A DNA stretch of 46,090 nucleotides. Origin: Perkinsus chesapeaki ATCC PRA-425. Its lineage: Eukaryota; Protista; Perkinsozoa. The stretch lies in contig JAAPAO010000258.1 in the NCBI GenBank assembly GCA_013115145.1, positions 1 to 46,090 on the forward strand, given 5' to 3'. This document shows positions 10,601-38,786 of the stretch, one piece after another. Each line of letters begins with the position of its first letter. The first letter of the stretch is position 1. Position numbers and translations under genes: made by a program. Below the pieces are notes generated by a model. The model searched no databases. It was not told the origin of the DNA and saw only the letters and a list, made by a program, of their open reading frames with translations.

Positions 10601-12494
10601 AGGCCAACCCAGAACTCATCGTGAAGGTAGCAGACCGCAGTTACCGCCGGAGGGGATCTCCTTCCCGGTTGTTCTGAAAACACGGACAATACCGGAGCGA
10701 AATCTGATTGCACACAGGCCACTTTCGGGCTCCGCACCGCGTTACCTTGTCCTTCACCGACATTCGGTAGAGTTAGATTGAGAACTCCTGATGGTGCAGG
10801 ACTATCCAAAGAGTTGAAGGCATACACCATTCCCGAGGTCGATCCTGTGATAAAGCGGATGACTGATAACACAACGGAGCCAAATACCACTACTACCAGC
10901 AACAACAGCTGTCCGATCCACACCTTCATCTTCCCTAGCTGGTACTATAGTCATGCAAGTTATACCATCCATCAACCCTTCAGCAGTAGTTGCCGCATCA
11001 CCCTCGGATGGTGACGTGAAGTATGTGTGAATGACCGTCTTTTGTTGTGGAGCGAATACCTAACCCTGTCGTTCTCCAGTTCTCCCCCCCTTGCTGCTAA
11101 GTTACCTCAATAAGATTCCGCTCCTGACAGCCTAAATATATAACGGGATTGCCGGCTATAAAGCCTTGACCACCGCACGTGAATGACTGACCTGATAAGA
11201 TACCACTTACCAGATACTTCCCTTTAAAGCCTAAGGATCCTATATATTGCTTTCCAAGAGATATTAGCAATAAAGATATTGTCGGGATTAATGCCGTTGA
11301 ATCGTTCAGTGAGCGAGCCTTCCCACGCTCGACGAAACACCAGAACGCACTCCAATCAGGGGGCAAGACTATAACAGCTCACATTACCCCATAAAAGTTG
11401 CTTCCGAATGGCGCGTATAGGAGCTAAAAACTGACAAGTCCTCCTAGAAAGACTCGAGCCATGGTATTTCAAGCACAACGGGAGCTCCGTAGAAAGTTTC
11501 CTTCTCCCATTTATAGTACCTTCCCGAGGTGTGTGCGAGTGCTCCAGCTTGGCCTTTTTAAACTCGTCATCCAATGAGTACAGTTCGAGTACTAACAAAC
11601 AGTGTAATAAGGCATATTAATCTTAAGGCTTATTACCGCTGGGAGTGAGACAGTAGGCTATCTCCTTGCCTTCAATTGTTATTATTCCCGACGCCAGCAC
11701 CGGGCCACGCTTACCTGTCCAACAAAGTAAATAAGAGAGCAGATGTCGATTGCTTAGCGCTTCTCGAAACGAGCCATTTCCTCATTATAATGTAAGTAGT
11801 AACAATCGTAAAACATTCTCCCCGGCAATAGTGGTACAATGATAGCAGCATATGAGGGTGACCGTGACTAGTAGGCATTCTCCGACATACCAGATAATTG
11901 TGGCCTTCCCTATCTATGTATTCCAAGCAAGCTACTATCTCTGCTAATCAACAAGGGGTCTGCTTATTATACACGCTTATGACACTATGAGCATTGGAGC
12001 ACCGCACAACTTGTGCGGCACAAGTGGAAAATAATCCGAAGAACACAGGGTTTGCAGCAGCGATTGCTTCAGCGAAGAAGAATAGTTGAGCGGAGTCCAA
12101 ACCTTCGAAGTAGAAAATTTGAGCTCGATGCAAAGTAAGAATATTTGCCAAGACTCATTGCAAGTCATGTCATCGCAATTACTTCACCCCTTCAACTGCA
12201 CAGTACCGGCCTTCTGTCTCAACAACCCAAGTTGCAAGATATGATATACATTCTAAGACGTGCTTAAGGGGCGTGATGTATCGTCAGTAATGTGACATTA
12301 CCAGACATAAGATTTATATTTACGCACTTTTGAGTAATTTTGAACAATTATTCTTATTTACAATACTTCGTGGTCAATCTTAGTCTACTCTTACCCGTTC
12401 GCTTATCGCCGAACTCCAGCTGAATCTCTAGGGCTGCACGAGACTGGCTACTTGACCACAACGAGTCTCGGAACGATGAAAGCCACTTGAACAT
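7663..12494 (-). CDS. Multi-exon WD40/beta-propeller-like hypothetical protein (could be two genes)
   Basis: First exon MFKWLSSFRDSLWSSSQSRAALEIQLEFGDKRT from ATG 12494 to a GTAAG donor. Propeller-like segments: FITGSTSGMVYAFN, AVTAVCYLHDEFWVGLENGSIVVLD, AITCINYCEMLDVVFTLAAHHTVVLW, VLGGTDGSIVLRQL, LAVCGKDGGVLAVRD..NTLEGHHDCSV. Ser/Arg-rich last exon ends at TGA 7663. Confidence 0.6.
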
Positions 12495-21600: not shown

Positions 21601-24600
21601 AAGTGCTATGTAAAGGTAGTTTATATACCACGTAGTAAGTGCTATGTAAAGGCAATTTATAAAGCACGTAGTAAGTGCTATGTAAAGGTAGTTTATATAC
21701 AAGTTTGTATTGCGTACTCCCTTGGAGATGACGTAGGTATTTCCTCCAGTATTGTTTAGTGAAGTCATTGTTGTGATGTTGTGTTATGTAGGTACGTTTC
21801 AAAACCCCAACTGGTAGCATAAATGCAGTGAATGGTCTCAATCTTGAGATGTTCAGAGATGAGCTCTTCGTCTTGTTGGGGCACAACGGTGCTGGTAAAT
21901 CAACAACCATCAACGTCCTGTCGGGTACAGTGAGTCCCACCAGCGGTGTAAGTCTGGGGTCTTCTTGGAACAAATCGTTGGAAAGTGGCGGGGATTTCGC
22001 GCTTTGAGTTGAGCATCATTGAGCTATCTCGAGGAGCTTATCCTATCATCACTTGGTATCGAGCACATGTTGCTGTGTGTATACATTGTCTCCCCCCAAC
22101 TCGATGGCATTCAGCAATTGTAAGGCTAATTAAACCTATACTCTTCGAATTGCTCCTCGTCAGTGGCCACCTATTACTCTGCCGTTTCTTCCAGGACGTT
22201 CGCATCTTCAACCACAAGGTCCCTGACGACATGCCAATTATCCGGCGGAGTATGGGCGTCTGTCTTCAACATAATGTGCTATGGGGAGACCTGACTGTTA
22301 AAGAGCATCTAGATCTCTTTGCGAGGATCCGAGGGCTCAAGACAGACGGCTCTAAGAAGCTGGCAGAGGAGGTTGGTCTCGGTATGAAATACAACGCAAA
22401 GGCGAAGACGCTCTCAGGTAAGGAGTTGTTTGAGCTCCATGTATACGATATTATCGTATACACTATCATAATCACGATAGTGTAACCGGTCCATTTCAAA
22501 CGGGGTATTCACCGCTACAGCTAACTGCACTGATACTTGTACGTAACCCTAAAGATTTGCTAGCTAACGGTGGCTTTATGAAACCATTGAATCCGCGAGT
22601 GAAGGGTCGGGAGCACATTACTTCTGTGACGTTGTGGTCTAAATTGTAATAACGAATGTTCCATCAGAGATATACCATCTATCTGTCTGCTCAGTAACTA
22701 CACTTCGCCTCTAACTATCCTCCTGTTGATATCTTTATCCTAGTTCCTATTGGTATCCATTTCAGGTGGTATGCAACGTAAGCTGTCGGTTGGTGTAGCA
22801 TTCGTCGGCAACCCCAAGGTGGTGATCCTTGATGAGCCATCTAGTGGTATGGATCCCAGTGCTCGTCGAAGCATGTGGGACTTCTTAAGAACTAAGAGAG
22901 AGGGCCGTATAATGTGCGTCACGACGCACTATATGGACGAGGCTGAAGTACTGGCCGATCGCGTTGGTATCATCGGTAATGGTCAGTTGTTGGCCTATGG
23001 CTCCACGAGCTTTCTCAAACGCCACTACGGTGAGCCTATCAATCATAAACTCATCCGCTTGCTGTTTATGCAGCTTGCTGTCAGGTAGCGGCTACAATGT
23101 GACTATTGCCAAGACCAAGGATGGCGTTCCCGACGAACCTATCCTGGAGTCCGTCCACAACTCCTTAGGAGACTATCCTGTCACAGTTGTGTCTAGCATT
23201 GGCCTGGAACTTGGTCTCCGAATACCATTCGAGGCTGTTGATAAGTTCGGGCCGATGTTTGAATCGTTGGATGATAACAAGGATGTTTTGGGGATCTCCT
23301 CGTATGGTGTATCGGTTACTAATCTAGAAGAAGTCTTTTTGAAAGTAAGTTGTCAGAAATTAATTTTTTCTGGTCTTTCAAAAAATTTATCATCTGCGCT
23401 TGATGGTCCTCTCCGTTCTGGATTATAATTGATATACTCATTCAAGCAGACTTCTGTGGATGACTTTATGGTTTGCTTTACAGGTAAGTGCCAAGTCGGA
23501 GAACCCTACTGATGCAGACATAAAGGCCCAGCACACAAAGATCCATGCCGATATCCCTATACGGCGGAATATCTTCAACCAGTTCTTGATCCTCTCTATG
23601 CGACGTATCATCTACGGCTACCGTAAATGGGGTGCCACGCTGGCAGGCTTCGTCATACCGTTCCTCGCGCTGTTGGCGCTCCTGGGTCTGCAGAAGGCCG
23701 CCCTGGCTCTCAAGGATCCGGTGCCCTTAGTCCTGGGTCCGACGAGTAGCCCGTACGAGCTTGGCCCAACCACCCACGTCAGCGGCTACTGGGATTATGA
23801 CCATCCGCAAGTGCTTCGAACAGTCTACAACGGCACGGAGCTCATCACGGACCTCTCAGTGCAGGACTTGAGCTTCTTTGAGTTTGTGGAGTGTATGCAT
23901 ATGCAGCCTTGGTACTTCATGGCTAATCCAACGAAGAACGTTAATCCTCTATTCCCGAGGAACCAGGCAATCTGCAAGGCGGTTACCACATTCTCAAAGT
24001 CACTGCTGGGCAACAACACAGCCACCTTTGACACTACAGCTTATGGAATCACCAGTAGAGTCGTCTTCGAGGACATGACGGCCATGCACATGCTGCCTTA
24101 TGCAATGTCGACAGACCATCCCAACGCCACAATCGTGAATCACCCGCTCCCGATAACCTACGGGCAAAAGAGCGCGGATTTGGTGAACATCTCGATGTCG
24201 ATGTCCCTCGGTGGTATGTTCGTTATTGCCTTTATCATCGCAGCCAGTAATATGCTTTCGTATGCTATGATGGAGAAGACCTCCCTTGTTAAGGAGCAGC
24301 TCTACGTCAGTGGCTGCAACATAGCGATGTATTGGATATCCTCTTGGATCTACGATTTCGCCACTATCTTCGCCTGTGCCGCACTATGCTTCAGTTGTAT
24401 TAAGATCTACAATCTGGATCTCTACTTGCACGGCAAAGCTCTAGCTGCTACATGGCTTCTCTTGCTGGGCTTCTGTTTCTGTGCGCCTGGTTTCAACTAC
24501 TGTGTTTCTCTCATATCAAGGACCACGACGGTGGCCACCTACATACGAGTTGGTATCGGTCTAGTTATCGGTATGATAGGTTCCTTTGTCGTTGCATTTC

Positions 24601-26563
24601 TACTCTACGGCGGGCTAAGGAACCCTGCTGGTGTGCCTCTGATGTGGGTGTTCCGTTTGGTGCCTTCATTTCCGCTCGCTAATGGAATCACCACAATGTT
24701 CTTTGCTACACTGGGGATGGTACGAACGCCCGACGGTGAGACCGGGGTGGTCGTCCCGCCCTTGACATCGGTTATTGCCGGAAACTGCGTAGAAGGCGCC
24801 ACACCGGGCAGCGAGGGTTACTATTGTGTGGCCGTCGCTGGTGATGATATTATAATGCTCTTCATCATGGGCATGTTCTACTTCGTCGTGGCGGTTTGTC
24901 TAGACTATTGGTTCTGCAATACGCGTTGGAACATCAAGAAGGATGTTCCAGTACCGGCGAGCCTGCAGGGTTTTGAAGACCACAGAGTCCTTCAAGAGAA
25001 GGAGAGAGTTGCACAGCTTGACCCGGAAACACAAATGGTGTATATTCGGAATCTGAAGAAGGTTTTCCATCAGCATAGCAAAAAGAAGCAGGTGAGCTCA
25101 GCAAAAGGCAGTTACGCAGTTTTAGTCATTCGTCAGGTGTGGGCCGTTCGTGGCCTCAACTATGCACTGGCTGATGGTGGTGTGTTCGGTCTGCTTGGCG
25201 TTAATGGTGCGGGTAAGACCACTACGTTCAAGATGCTTTGTGGTCTTCTGAAACCAACAGCTGGTGTTATCTATCTTGCTGGCCGGAGTCTTTCCGGCAA
25301 CACCGACGAGGTGGGCTGTCACAGAGCTTCAGGCTCTGCATTGATGCCGTTTCTCAGGCGCGCAAGAATATTGGTTACTGTCCACAGCAGGACGCCTTGA
25401 TTGACGGCCTCACTGTTGAAGAACATCTCACCATGTAAGATACCATCTGAGTATCGTCCCTCTTTCACGACTCTTGGCGTGCAGGTACGGCGTGATTAGA
25501 GGAGTGCCTTTGAGGATGTTGAAGAGACATGTAACAGAGCTGATGGAGATACTTCAATTGAGGTAAAAATGAGCTTATGCAAGTCGTCTAATCACGTTTA
25601 TCAGCCGCTACGCGCATTCCTATGGAACGAGGCTCTCTGGTGGTAACAAGAGAAAGCTTTGTGTCGGCATGGCTCTTATTGGTCACCCGTCAATAGTGTT
25701 CCTCGATGAGCCAACAACAGGTGTAGATCCTGAGGCTAGAAGGTGCGCACTGACGCCGCCTACATGACGATCATAACATCTTTTGTCGCTCAGGAACATT
25801 TGGAATGTGATAAATAAGATAGCAAACGGTCGTGGAAAAAGATCCGCAGTGATTCTCACGACACACAGCATGGAGGAGGCTGATGCACTTTGCAATGAGA
25901 TGGTCATCCAGGTAGGCACTTGATTGTTGGGGCTTCATTTTGGCCACAATTTTCATCTTAGGTTGATGGGCAGTTCCGATGTCTTGGAACGTCACAGCAA
26001 ATCAAATCGGAGTACGGCGCCGGGTATAAGCTGCAGGTCCATTTCGTACCCGCGCCAATACGAGAGAGAACTCTTACTTTGCGGAGGATATCCTCAGCGA
26101 AGAAGGGAGATAGAATGGACTACCTTACGCGGACTGACGACGAAATCAAAGAGCTCCTCGAGGAGAATGGTAAGGGACCTGTTCGGCGGAAAGTTGGTTG
26201 TATTTTTTATTAGGCGTTACGGATCCCAACGCCATAAACTCTGTCGTACTTCTTGGTTCCCCCCAGCCTGATGGCGGCCGGATGTTCAGCGGTCCTACTC
26301 TCGCCGAAGGTGTTCATCGTGCACAGCTACACGAGCGAATGCTTCGATGGTTACAGAAGAACCTTGGCGCGGGCTGCTCGTCCTTAGACAGCATCGGCGA
26401 GTACAATCTACCAAAGGAGCTTAAACTTGGCGATGTCTTCACTCGCCTTACGGATCCTAAAGTCAAACATGAGTTGGGCTATGATGATTTCCAGCTAACT
26501 CAGACTACACTCGAGCACGTCTTCAACACTTTTGCCAAACAGAGCGGTGCGAAAGAAGAATGA
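18602..26563 (+). CDS. ABCA: Full-size ABCA-subfamily ABC transporter (2 TMD + 2 NBD)
   Basis: N-terminal [11 protein letters not shown]...EFIIP. EGMRVMGL after TMD1 entry. NBD1: [44 protein letters not shown]2: [52 protein letters not shown]-terminal [13 protein letters not shown] and TGA at 26563. Confidence 0.95.
21524..21701. repeat. Intronic 36-bp minisatellite, ~5 copies
   Basis: Units start at 21524, 21560, 21596, 21632 and 21668; consensus GTARTAAGTGCTATGTAAAGGYARTTTATAWASCAC. There are no spacers, so this is not CRISPR. It lies in the ABCA intron ~21158-21790. Confidence 0.95.
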
Positions 26564-26930
26564 TTGACACCTTAAACCATTCTGTTATTATGTTCATTTT
26601 CGTTTCGAGAATTTTATTCGTCGAAATGTTTCTTGTTCCTCTTGTAGTACCATATGTATAGTTAGATTTACACTCATTCATCGTCCGCCTGTGTGTAATT
26701 GTCAACGGATTTGTCTTTGCCTCTACAAGTGTTATTGTTGTGTTGCCGCCCAGTTTTTACAACTTCTGAGCAATCGACCGGATATACATCGAGTGTATCC
26801 TGGGGCTCAGTGTTCGGTAGAACATGTATATGTGGACTACGAGACACATAACGAAGTTGTAACCAACAAAGACGTGTCCGTCGTAGATAAAGAAATTCGG
26901 GCATTACGCAGCGCCACTAGACCATGGGTA

Positions 26931-26964
26931 CTAATTCCCTGACTCTTCTAATTCCCTGACTCTT
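26931..26964. repeat. Perfect 17-bp tandem duplication
   Basis: CTAATTCCCTGACTCTT occurs at 26931-26947 and 26948-26964. Confidence 0.95.
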
Positions 26965-26970
26965 CATTTT

Positions 26971-27045
26971 GCTTATTGAGCAAACACATATAACAAGCGC
27001 TCCAGTAACACTGGAGCGCTTGTTATATTTTGGTGCTCAATAAGC
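26971..27045. repeat. 75-bp near-perfect inverted repeat (fold-back)
   Basis: Left arm GCTTATTGAGCA-aacac-ATATAACAAGCGCTCCAGT, loop AAC, right arm ACTGGAGCGCTTGTTATAT-tttgg-TGCTCAATAAGC: a 19-bp perfect stem, a 5x5 internal loop and a 12-bp perfect stem. Confidence 0.95.
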
Positions 27046-27149
27046 GACAGTGTAGGAACATCTGCTTGGCTTCCACAACAGAGCTGGACTGGTGAGCCGT
27101 GTTTCCTCCTTATCCTATATGGGACAAGGGTGTTTCAAACGTTAATTAA

Positions 27150-27400
27150 TCAATTGATAATCAATTGCCGACAATCCCTATCGGCTTGTTCCGTAAACTC
27201 TAATGAGAATACGAGTAACCTTCGCCAGTACGAATCCCCAACCGGAGAATTCGCGGTCAGCGGGCGAAGTCAACAGCTGACCCTTTAGATGAGTTAATTC
27301 GGGTTTCGGATACACCCTAAGGGTGCTGCCCCAATAGAGGGCATACACATAGGCACGGACAGGAGGTGTCACGGTACTTATTTGAGGGAAATATGGTATG
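27150..27400 (-). ncRNA. Structured non-coding RNA; candidate telomerase RNA core (template + pseudoknot); transcript ends unknown
   Basis: Minus strand 5'->3': hairpin 27343-27327, hairpin GCACCC-UUA-GGGUGU 27326-27312, AU, CCGAAACCCGAA 27309-27298, 15-nt linker, then an H-type pseudoknot with two perfect 7-bp stems (27282-27276/27261-27255 and 27269-27263/27226-27220) and further hairpins. Several G-U pairs work only on the minus strand. The structure is seen in sequence; the telomerase identity is inference. Confidence 0.55.
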
Positions 27401-27810
27401 CGCACGCGTGCAAATACTGCTTGCTGTGCAGCCTCTGCAGTTCCCAAGGAAGGCCAAAAGCATAGCACCCAGTCGCTACACAACTTATGCAGAGCGAGTT
27501 CCCTGTGCTTCGGTTACCATTGTGAGGGTGGGGTGTAGAATTCGTGAAAACATAACCCTTTGCCCGGTGCGTACAACGTGAGCAAGCAAAAACGAACATC
27601 GCGGGAGCACGAGCTGGGTGTCGGAGTGTAACTGTTGCGATGCATCGAATAAAATAGCCATAGCTCGCCACTTTCGGTCATTTTAGATACCCCATACTGT
27701 ATAACGCGATAGATGTAGATGCATTATCATACTTATGAGGTAAAATGTGAAACACTGAATTCATCTTGGCCAAACTGATGCACTAACCAATATCCATGGC
27801 CGACTCTGCC

Positions 27811-28981
27811 TCAGCTATCACGCTTGCGCTTGCCCGTCTCGTTATCGCCTGTGGCTTCTTTCGGCATGTTGTTGCTCGCCCAGAGACACTGCTGAACCTG
27901 CGGGATTCCCGCAGCGGGAATGGTCGCTTGCACAGGCGTTTTAAGTTTACCCTCTCAGCGGTCCAGTCGGCCTCGTTTTCGGACATTTTGTGAAGCTCAG
28001 CAGCTGTCTGCGCGATATGGCCGAAAACAGCTTTATACGTTGGGAGATCGTATCTGAAAAAACGGGGCACTAAGGGAAGCCTTCACTCAGTTGGCCTACT
28101 TCCGTGGGACATCGCAAGCTAGAATAGCTTCGTCACTCATGAATGGAATACTCGGATCCCGAGTAGAGAGCACTGCACTTGCTGTTGCTACTCCAACTCC
28201 TAAAATTCTACCAAGTAAAACACGATGTCGAGAACGGGTCGAACAGAGCATCCGTGTAACCATGTAATGGAGATTTGTCGTACCTCTAAGAGCTGTGAGC
28301 GCTACCACAGCTTCGATCAGGTTCCCTCGGGCTAGCTGAAAGGCCTATCACGGGCTTTCGAATTCAAGTGGAGCTACTTCCTCCGTGGCTGCTTTCCATG
28401 CATCCGCGACGGCCTTTTCTGAGTTCCCTTCGACCTACATGAGGAACAGGGATGACAAGCCAAGAGAACTGGTGGATTCGATCACTGAAGTCACCGAATA
28501 GTGGTCGACTCTGCGTCTCGAGAGTTTTCGTACTTGCTACGCTCAAGCTTGCAACAATTGGATAAAGTTACGATATTTCCAACGAGGCCACCCGAGGATA
28601 CCATCTTCATCAAGGGTCGGAATTTTCCTCTCGTGATCTTCCACTTCACGATTTGCTTGAGACTCTCGCGGCTGAGATTTTCATCAGAGTCGCCAAACTG
28701 AACACAACGGTCGCTCCCGCCGAGATCGCGGAGAGCTTCGGGGCCTTCAGACCGAGAGCACAAATCACCTGGCGACGCGCCTCGTCTAATTCGCGCAGTA
28801 ATGGCCAGGCCTTTCGTTTCTTGCCAACCACCTATGGAGACAAGCAACTGGGTTCACGGAGGTTTGTGTGACATTAAAAGGCACGCCTCACCTCGAGCGC
28901 CGATTCATAGCCTTTTTCAGCAGCTTTCCAATCATCGAGAGAACGACTCTGGATTAGCCTACCAGGGGGATAATCGGGCAT
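27811..28981 (-). CDS. Amun-like protein (helix-hairpin-helix DNA-glycosylase-like fold, uncharacterised family)
   Basis: Seven exons stitch in frame: MPDYPPGRLIQSRSLDDWKAAEKGYESALE|VVGKKRKAWPLLRELDEARRQ|FGDSDENLSRESLKQIVKWKITRGKFRPLMKM|VEGNSEKAVADAWKAATEE|LARGNLIEAVVALTALRG|VGVATASAVLSTRDPSIPFMSDEA...RK|YDLPTYKAVF...DWTAER|VQQCLWASN..*. The motifs WKxxRGKFRP, LxGVGxATASAVL and PFMSDEA typify the Drosophila Amun-related family. Confidence 0.8.
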
Positions 28982-29076
28982 TCAATAGTTCGAAAGGCAC
29001 GGGATGAGGCAGACAGTAAAACTGTGACGAGGGAAAACTTCGTAGTACCAACACTGCGCTGGCAGCGCAAATAAAG

Positions 29077-29149
29077 AGCCTTCTGCCGGAGTCGAACCGA
29101 CGACCTCCCGCTTACTAAGCGGGTGCTCTACCAACTAAGCTAAGAAGGC
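29077..29149 (-). tRNA. tRNA-Thr(AGT)
   Basis: GCCTTCTTAGCTTAGTTGGTAGAGCACCCGCTT-AGT-AAGCGGGAGGTCGTCGGTTCGACTCCGGCAGAAGGCT: acceptor GCCTTCT/AGAAGGC, anticodon stem CCCGC/GCGGG, T-loop GTTCGAC, 73 nt, no intron. Confidence 0.98.
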
Positions 29150-33410: not shown

Positions 33411-37169
<3,759 letters not shown>

Positions 37170-38699: not shown

Positions 38700-38786
38700 G
38701 CACTGGTGACCCGGGCTGGTGCTCGGCCAGGACTTCAAATCCTGGGGTGTCGGGAGGCACAGGCGCTCGATTCGCCCTCCGGTGCG
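38700..38786 (+). tRNA. tRNA-Sec (selenocysteine, anticodon TCA), eukaryotic 9/4 fold
   Basis: GCACTGGTG AC CCGGGC-TGGT-GCTCGG CCAGGA-CTTCAAA-TCCTGG G GTGTC-GGGA-GGCAC A GGCG-CTCGATT-CGCC CTCCGGTGC G. It has a 9-bp acceptor stem with U-U, a 6-bp D stem with 4-nt loop, a UCA anticodon, a long variable arm, a 4-bp T stem and a G73 discriminator; 87 nt. Confidence 0.93.

Follow-up and report, generated by a model that had tools for sequence, protein, structure and literature searches.

The 46,090-nt stretch of Perkinsus chesapeaki DNA analysed here (the window), which is the entire contig JAAPAO010000258.1 of assembly GCA_013115145.1, raises the question of whether the telomerase RNA (TER or TR) of this organism is encoded in the intergenic DNA between the convergent 3' ends of an ABCA gene and a gene for a 183-aa protein. 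Because telomerase RNAs evolve so rapidly, they have had to be discovered anew in each major lineage, and the literature that we searched yielded none from Perkinsus, perkinsids or dinoflagellates. Direct reading of the minus strand, re-derived by script, gives a candidate of ~180 non-coding bases that carries a template, a boundary hairpin and a pseudoknot. A previous interpretation of this locus, made from the letters of the DNA only and called here the sequence-only reading, had listed these hairpins, the template, the linker and the pseudoknot, and all of them were recovered at the positions that it had given (Table 1). We conclude that the minus-strand stretch is probably the gene for the P. 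chesapeaki telomerase RNA, an identification that the sequence-only reading had also made and that is supported by the match of the template, the unusual order of the parts and the lack of any other Rfam family at the site.

Table 1. Features of the candidate telomerase RNA, its flanking genes and the corresponding interval of P. olseni; positions are those of the window unless a P. olseni locus is named.
Feature	Position	Strand	Remarks
ABCA gene	22771-26563	+	annotated
183-aa orphan gene	27811-28981	-	annotated
AAAUAAG box	27377-27383	-	A/T-rich; about 40 nt upstream of H1; preceded by a pyrimidine tract
Possible enclosing helix, 5' strand GUCCGUG	27360-27354	-	pairs with 27195-27188 only via a 1-nt bulge
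Hairpin H1 UGCCCU-CUAUU-GGGGCA	27343-27327	-	6 bp, 5-nt loop, 1 G-U; in MFE and centroid folds
Hairpin H2 GCACCC-UUA-GGGUGU	27326-27312	-	6 bp, 1 G-U; candidate template boundary element
Template CCGAAACCCGAA	27309-27298	-	12 nt; 7 nt templating + 5 nt alignment; specifies (TTTCGGG)n
Single-stranded linker, template to pseudoknot	27297-27283	-	15 nt; unpaired in folds
H-type pseudoknot	27282-27220	-	predicted; 14/14 stem pairs Watson-Crick
Pseudoknot S1 GGUCAGC/GCUGACC	27282-27276 with 27261-27255	-	7 bp
Pseudoknot S2 CUUCGCC/GGCGAAG	27269-27263 with 27226-27220	-	7 bp
Pseudoknot loops		-	L1 UGUUGA 6 nt, L2 1 nt, L3 28 nt
Hairpin inside pseudoknot L3	27252-27232	-	8 bp
Small hairpin CGUA..CUC-AUUA-GAG..UACG	27213-27192	-	in MFE and centroid folds; holds the element's first UUU run
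3' hairpin GCCGAUA-GGGAU-UGUCGGC	27185-27167	-	7 bp; last element common to both alleles
Last hairpin	27166-27150	-	mostly within the 437-bp segment missing from the other allele
P. olseni interval	L002 13597-22269 with L005 8817-11559

The telomere repeat of the genus bears directly on the template. The run CCGAAACCCGAA is the exact complement of TTTCGGG over 1.7 repeats, in the correct orientation for making the G-rich strand. Its period is broken by the flanking base on each side, so that the template-like run is exactly 12 nt long, and it is the only run of at least 10 nt of its repeat in the window. Fulneckova et al., working from genome data, reported TTTCGGG as the candidate telomere repeat of Perkinsus marinus, which was unexpected (PMC3622300). 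The repeat itself is not new, having been published for that species in 2013, and its prediction for the present locus from sequence alone holds for the lineage; the agreement is with an in-silico candidate from a congener. A telomere of this kind is biochemically workable, because the same TTTCGGG repeat is specified by the AAACCCG-type template of TR2 in Mimulus guttatus and M. lewisii, where the change of telomere through a single U-to-G substitution in the template is experimentally established, with verification by FISH, TRF and TRAP (PMC12169523). Mimulus TR2 is of independent origin, in a flowering plant, and shares no homology with the candidate beyond the template. From the common plant CCCUAAA type the candidate template is one base per repeat apart.

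The 12-mer alone is unremarkable, because the chance expectation for such runs (7 phases x 2 strands x 46,090 / 4^12) is ~0.04 per window, that is, tens per genome. Period-7 12-mers number 90 in the window (16 C-rich), and the one that was chosen for its structural context matches the repeat of the genus. We therefore asked how often this context arises. A hairpin of at least 6 bp ends no more than 4 nt upstream of 2.8% of window positions as background. Pseudoknots were scanned on both strands (92 kb) as perfect 7+7 stems with loops of 2-10, 0-2 and 2-45 nt. Exactly one perfect 7+7 H-type pseudoknot was found, that of the candidate, which starts 15 nt 3' of the template; with 6+6 stems the same 92 kb gave eight, in agreement with random expectation. 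By arithmetic from the geometry of the scan, about 1e-4 such 7+7 pseudoknots would be expected at random within 30 nt of any one site. Control template-like 8-9-mers, drawn from the window and five P. olseni loci (~135 kb), were without a pseudoknot in all 15 cases, even one of 6+5 bp within 60 nt. The probability that a boundary hairpin and such a pseudoknot coincide at a random template-like site comes to about 1e-5 or less; even if the post hoc choice of parameters is granted a factor of 30, the number of false positives expected per genome stays far below one. The combined order of boundary hairpin, template, linker, pseudoknot and 3' hairpin is real and statistically unusual.

These numbers weigh on the explanation by coincidence, in which an interstitial telomere-like 12-mer, arisen by chance or left by telomerase-mediated repair, sits next to hairpins by accident in rapidly evolving intergenic DNA that makes no functional RNA. 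The tens of such 12-mers expected per genome and the several 8-9-mers seen in the Perkinsus DNA examined are what this explanation predicts, and transcription of the candidate is presumed in our account. The product of hairpin and pseudoknot frequencies argues against it, as do the control sites, none of which was similar, and the correct orientation of the template. We consider coincidence unlikely.

Six G-U pairs were counted in the stems, in line with the roughly six from which the sequence-only reading had fixed the strand, and these favour the minus strand, which also folds better than the plus strand (-67.7 vs -58.3 kcal/mol). The fold z-score of the minus-strand candidate, from a calculation that is blind to the pseudoknot, is -1.68, a weak value that would also fit a chance arrangement. 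Scored separately, S1 contributes about -11.6 and S2 about -8.7 kcal/mol. Hairpin H2 is separated from the template by a 2-nt spacer (AU). A U.A-U triple-helix signature is not evident in the pseudoknot, as L1 is UGUUGA and there is no A-rich tract; S2 has just two U-A pairs, both distal, and its junction-proximal pairs are G-C. The signature is also weak in some small TERs.

Outside the core, the sequence-only reading fared less evenly. It had enclosed the core by a possible helix between 27360-27354 and 27195-27188. The two strands are present and pair around the bulge, but the helix is absent from both the MFE and the centroid folds and is not significant alone, and its 3' strand competes with a rival local hairpin of the MFE fold (27213-27192); as a modelled feature, a core-enclosing helix is doubtful. 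Predicted folds offer two candidates for a distal element, the hairpins at 27213-27192 and 27185-27167, of which the latter is a possible analogue of stem-loop IV. Two 3' hairpins had been claimed. The GCCGAUA hairpin is retained in both alleles, while that at 27166-27150 is doubtful, as it probably lies outside the element because most of it falls within a polymorphic 437-bp segment that is absent from another allele.

We compared the locus with the known RNA families. At the gathering threshold, Rfam 15 returned only tRNA-Thr and tRNA-Sec in the whole window, and a search of positions 26600-28000 with 4227 Rfam families identified neither a telomerase RNA nor any other family at E up to 10. 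RNase P/MRP, SRP, U3, snoRNAs and riboswitches were rejected for want of a covariance-model match at the candidate, which bears out the exclusion of RNase MRP/P, SRP and U3 on which the sequence-only reading had made its proposal depend. The only matches, of miRNA type and on the palindrome at 26965-27049, were dismissed as chance. A coding origin was also rejected, as the ORFs overlapping the candidate have no Pfam match.

Signals for transcription were sought around the element. The AAAUAAG box could be a TATA-like promoter element, or its AG could form a splice acceptor with the tract that precedes it. The tRNA-Sec gene of the window has an upstream A/T box, GAAUAAAC, about 35-40 nt away, a spacing that resembles that of the AAAUAAG box before the candidate. 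No upstream motif common to the candidate, tRNA-Sec and tRNA-Thr was found, and there is no recognisable snRNA-type promoter upstream of the candidate; a USE/TATA promoter is not definable, as the window offers no snRNA genes to compare with. The candidate has no T4 terminator, and neither have the two tRNA genes of the window; on the minus strand there is no TTT between 27343 and 27198. A search of sequencing runs listed no RNA run that contains the stretch, and two small RNA contig sets of the species had no match over 4 kb, neighbouring genes included, and hence are uninformative on expression. The tRNA genes are of interest in their own right. The tRNA-Sec (UCA) gene (38700-38786, plus strand) scores 71 bits, and its presence indicates that P. 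chesapeaki has selenocysteine machinery. For tRNA-Thr(AGU) (29076-29149, minus strand), the summed depth in contigs of DNA runs exceeds that of its flanks more than 1000-fold, from which it follows that this sequence is highly repeated or common to many other contigs.

On the same strand lies the 183-aa gene, whose stop codon is ~450 nt upstream of the candidate. The sequence-only reading had named this neighbour 'Amun', a name that finds no support, as the gene is without a family match: Pfam gives none, and for two of its ORFs no homologues were found among 5.8 billion proteins. It aligns at the DNA level with a 134-aa gene of P. olseni, and it is either an orphan, fast-evolving gene or a doubtful model. 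On the other side of the candidate, the large ABCA exon has 86% identity to a P. olseni protein. A gene for a DDX3-like DEAD-box helicase is found further along the window (33411-37100, minus strand) and is broken up into numerous exons of only about 20-60 aa, an illustration of the dense intron load of the P. chesapeaki genome.

This arrangement suggests that the stretch might be transcribed as something else, namely as the 3' UTR of the 183-aa gene or as an unrelated structured ncRNA or regulatory element, the template-like run being incidental. The stop codon on the same strand at so short a distance is compatible with a UTR, an independent promoter and terminator were not found, and the ends of any RNA are predicted ones. 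Against this, the 4227 Rfam families offer no other identity for the stretch even at the permissive E value, the 183-aa gene is without detectable homologues or domains, and its P. olseni counterpart aligns just to the stop codon. A UTR would also leave the coincidence of template, boundary hairpin and pseudoknot unexplained. We regard transcription as something else as quite improbable. The UTR version partly overlaps with the telomerase RNA reading, because processing of TER from longer Pol II transcripts is known in other lineages, for example for the trans-spliced Leishmania telomerase RNA candidate (PMC4229120).

Sequence differences between strains and alleles, from a second P. chesapeaki sample, were located relative to the predicted parts of the telomerase RNA. 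Within the element there are five: 27288 and 27290, which are fixed and fall in the linker, 27214 and 27215, which fall just 3' of S2, and 27249, in the loop-3 hairpin, which occurs in one run only. All five lie outside H1, H2, the template, S1 and S2, a distribution that is weakly supportive (p about 0.12). In one allele of the second sample, position 26725 is joined directly to 27163, so that the 437-bp segment 26726-27162 is absent or replaced; the junction at 27163 is likely to mark the 3' limit of the element. Two repeats lie in the segment, a tandem duplication of 17 nt (26931-26964) and an inverted repeat (26971-27045) whose arms are 36 nt long and which accounts for the spurious miRNA-like Rfam matches. 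The segment may represent a small insertion element abutting the candidate at its 3' end; a target-site duplication was not observed. Indel polymorphism this close to the candidate is also in keeping with coincidence.

The candidate is single copy, as judged from a depth in DNA runs equal to that of the flanks and from self-BLAST of the window. An origin of the interval 26564-27811 in a repeat or transposon was rejected, as it has no second copy in the window. These observations limit the explanation that the candidate is a relocated or duplicated copy (a paralogue or pseudogene), the active telomerase RNA gene being elsewhere in the genome. Telomerase RNA duplicates do exist in Mimulus (PMC12169523), the candidate adjoins an indel-polymorphic, palindrome-bearing segment, and, as described below, it is missing from the syntenic interval of P. 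olseni. The depth of the locus speaks against multiple copies of high identity, no second copy occurs within the window, and all stems are intact and perfectly paired. We give a relocated or duplicated copy only a very slim chance.

For conservation, the sequence-only reading had pointed to the syntenic interval between ABCA and 'Amun' in related species. That interval was found in P. olseni and is without an orthologue of the candidate (loci L002, L005 and L006; one gap of 97 N). On the ABCA side, synteny with P. olseni (L001-L003) extends up to window position 26733, with no tblastx match beyond. On the other side, it covers a 367-aa gene, tRNA-Thr(AGU) and the 183-aa gene as far as its stop codon at 27811 (L005 and L006, both reached by searching exhaustively with one exon from the 367-aa gene); tRNA-Thr(AGU) is syntenic in both species, downstream of the 367-aa gene (L005 7461-7535; also L006). 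Since L005 and L002 overlap tail to tail, the interval measures ~9.8 kb in P. olseni vs 1.25 kb in P. chesapeaki. It holds an intronless 350-aa ORF, other called genes and a duplicated ABCA fragment (L005 10732-10917, L002 21329-21521). At the L001 locus, one P. olseni contig ends downstream of ABCA in a called 237-aa ORF (11542-12255) with no recorded domain; from its position at a contig break we would guess that this ORF may be part of a mobile element.

Within the P. olseni interval there is no template-like run of at least 9 nt, the single 8-mer there is without context, and no pseudoknot lies beside a template. Similarity of the interval to the candidate is no higher than that of shuffled controls, and a scan for TTTAGGG, TTAGGG and similar types, which ended at an N, gave no match in the interval. 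The lack of conservation is consistent with coincidence. The two species are distant, however, with about 70% nucleotide identity in the ABCA coding sequence and 52% protein identity in the 367-aa gene; the interval is completely turned over, and P. olseni assemblies differ from one another by about 9% within it. The missing orthologue is thus moderate evidence against the telomerase RNA reading and no refutation, and it implies that the P. olseni telomerase RNA lies elsewhere or within the gap.

What we infer for the candidate's transcription, RNA ends, polymerase, TERT binding and activity is as follows. The RNA would have its 5' end near 27343-27360 and its 3' end between 27195 and 27163, and would be expressed from a Pol III promoter or, alternatively, by Pol II with trans-splicing. 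The 3' five bases of CCGAAACCCGAA, CCGAA, would pair with a chromosome end in ...TTCGG, and TERT would copy the 5' seven bases, CCGAAAC, adding GTTTCGG. H2, 2 nt upstream, would block copying past the template and so serve as the template boundary, and translocation would then follow, giving the product (TTTCGGG)n. As in the ciliate and plant RNAs, TERT would be bound by the pseudoknot and the 3' hairpin, which would complete the catalytic core.

The proposed telomerase RNA resembles that of ciliates (Tetrahymena type; Telomerase-cil, RF00025), which are likewise alveolates with small RNAs of about 150-200 nt. The ciliate RNA has the order stem II, template, pseudoknot III and stem-loop IV. 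The order of parts in the candidate runs parallel, from boundary helix through a template of one repeat plus short alignment and a linker to a compact H-type pseudoknot and a terminal stem-loop, and a possible long-range closing helix would be a further likeness. Unlike the ciliate RNA, the candidate has no match to RF00025 even at E up to 10, has the template CCGAAACCCGAA in place of CAACCCCAA, and carries two stacked hairpins on its 5' side where ciliates have the single stem II; it also differs in having no T-run terminator, no defined upstream element and no evident triple helix in the pseudoknot. Ciliate and plant TRs are transcribed by Pol III (PMC8287931), and the TRs of plants and other Diaphoretickes have type-3 Pol III promoters (Fajkus et al. 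2021, PMC8287931). The logic by which the Diaphoretickes TRs were found, a template permutation with a nearby boundary element and pseudoknot (PMC8287931), is the one used here. Neither that survey (PMC8287931) nor a 2025 review (PMC12133305) mentions Perkinsus, Myzozoa or dinoflagellates.

The nearest lineage with a described telomerase RNA is that of Plasmodium, also in the Myzozoa, which has a related telomere repeat of the TT(T/C)AGGG type. The P. falciparum RNA, about 2.2 kb long (cited in PMC5855555), is ~10x longer than the core of the candidate, the RNA of which could extend beyond that core. No sequence or Rfam relationship between the candidate and the P. falciparum telomerase RNA was detected.

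If confirmed, the candidate would explain at the molecular level why Perkinsus has its unusual TTTCGGG telomere, and it is probably the first telomerase RNA in the perkinsid and dinoflagellate branch. More tentatively, at somewhat less than an even chance in our view, a compact telomerase RNA of ~150-200 nt with the ciliate and plant layout is retained in perkinsids and, by extension, in the dinoflagellate branch of the alveolates, and one U-to-G change per template repeat explains TTTCGGG. Were this true, the small RNA would be ancestral for alveolates and the 2.2-kb Plasmodium RNA derived, and the candidate would be the first telomerase RNA for the whole of Perkinsozoa and Dinoflagellata and a seed for finding others. 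Confirmation of the candidate would likewise bear on the hypothesis that small ciliate- and plant-like TERs are ancestral in Diaphoretickes (PMC8287931), as opposed to the long Plasmodium form, and the template, boundary hairpin and pseudoknot would seed a covariance model for searches in other Perkinsus, syndinians and dinoflagellates. For P. chesapeaki, a parasite of clams, and its relatives in commercial bivalves, a confirmed candidate would be a lineage-specific essential RNA.
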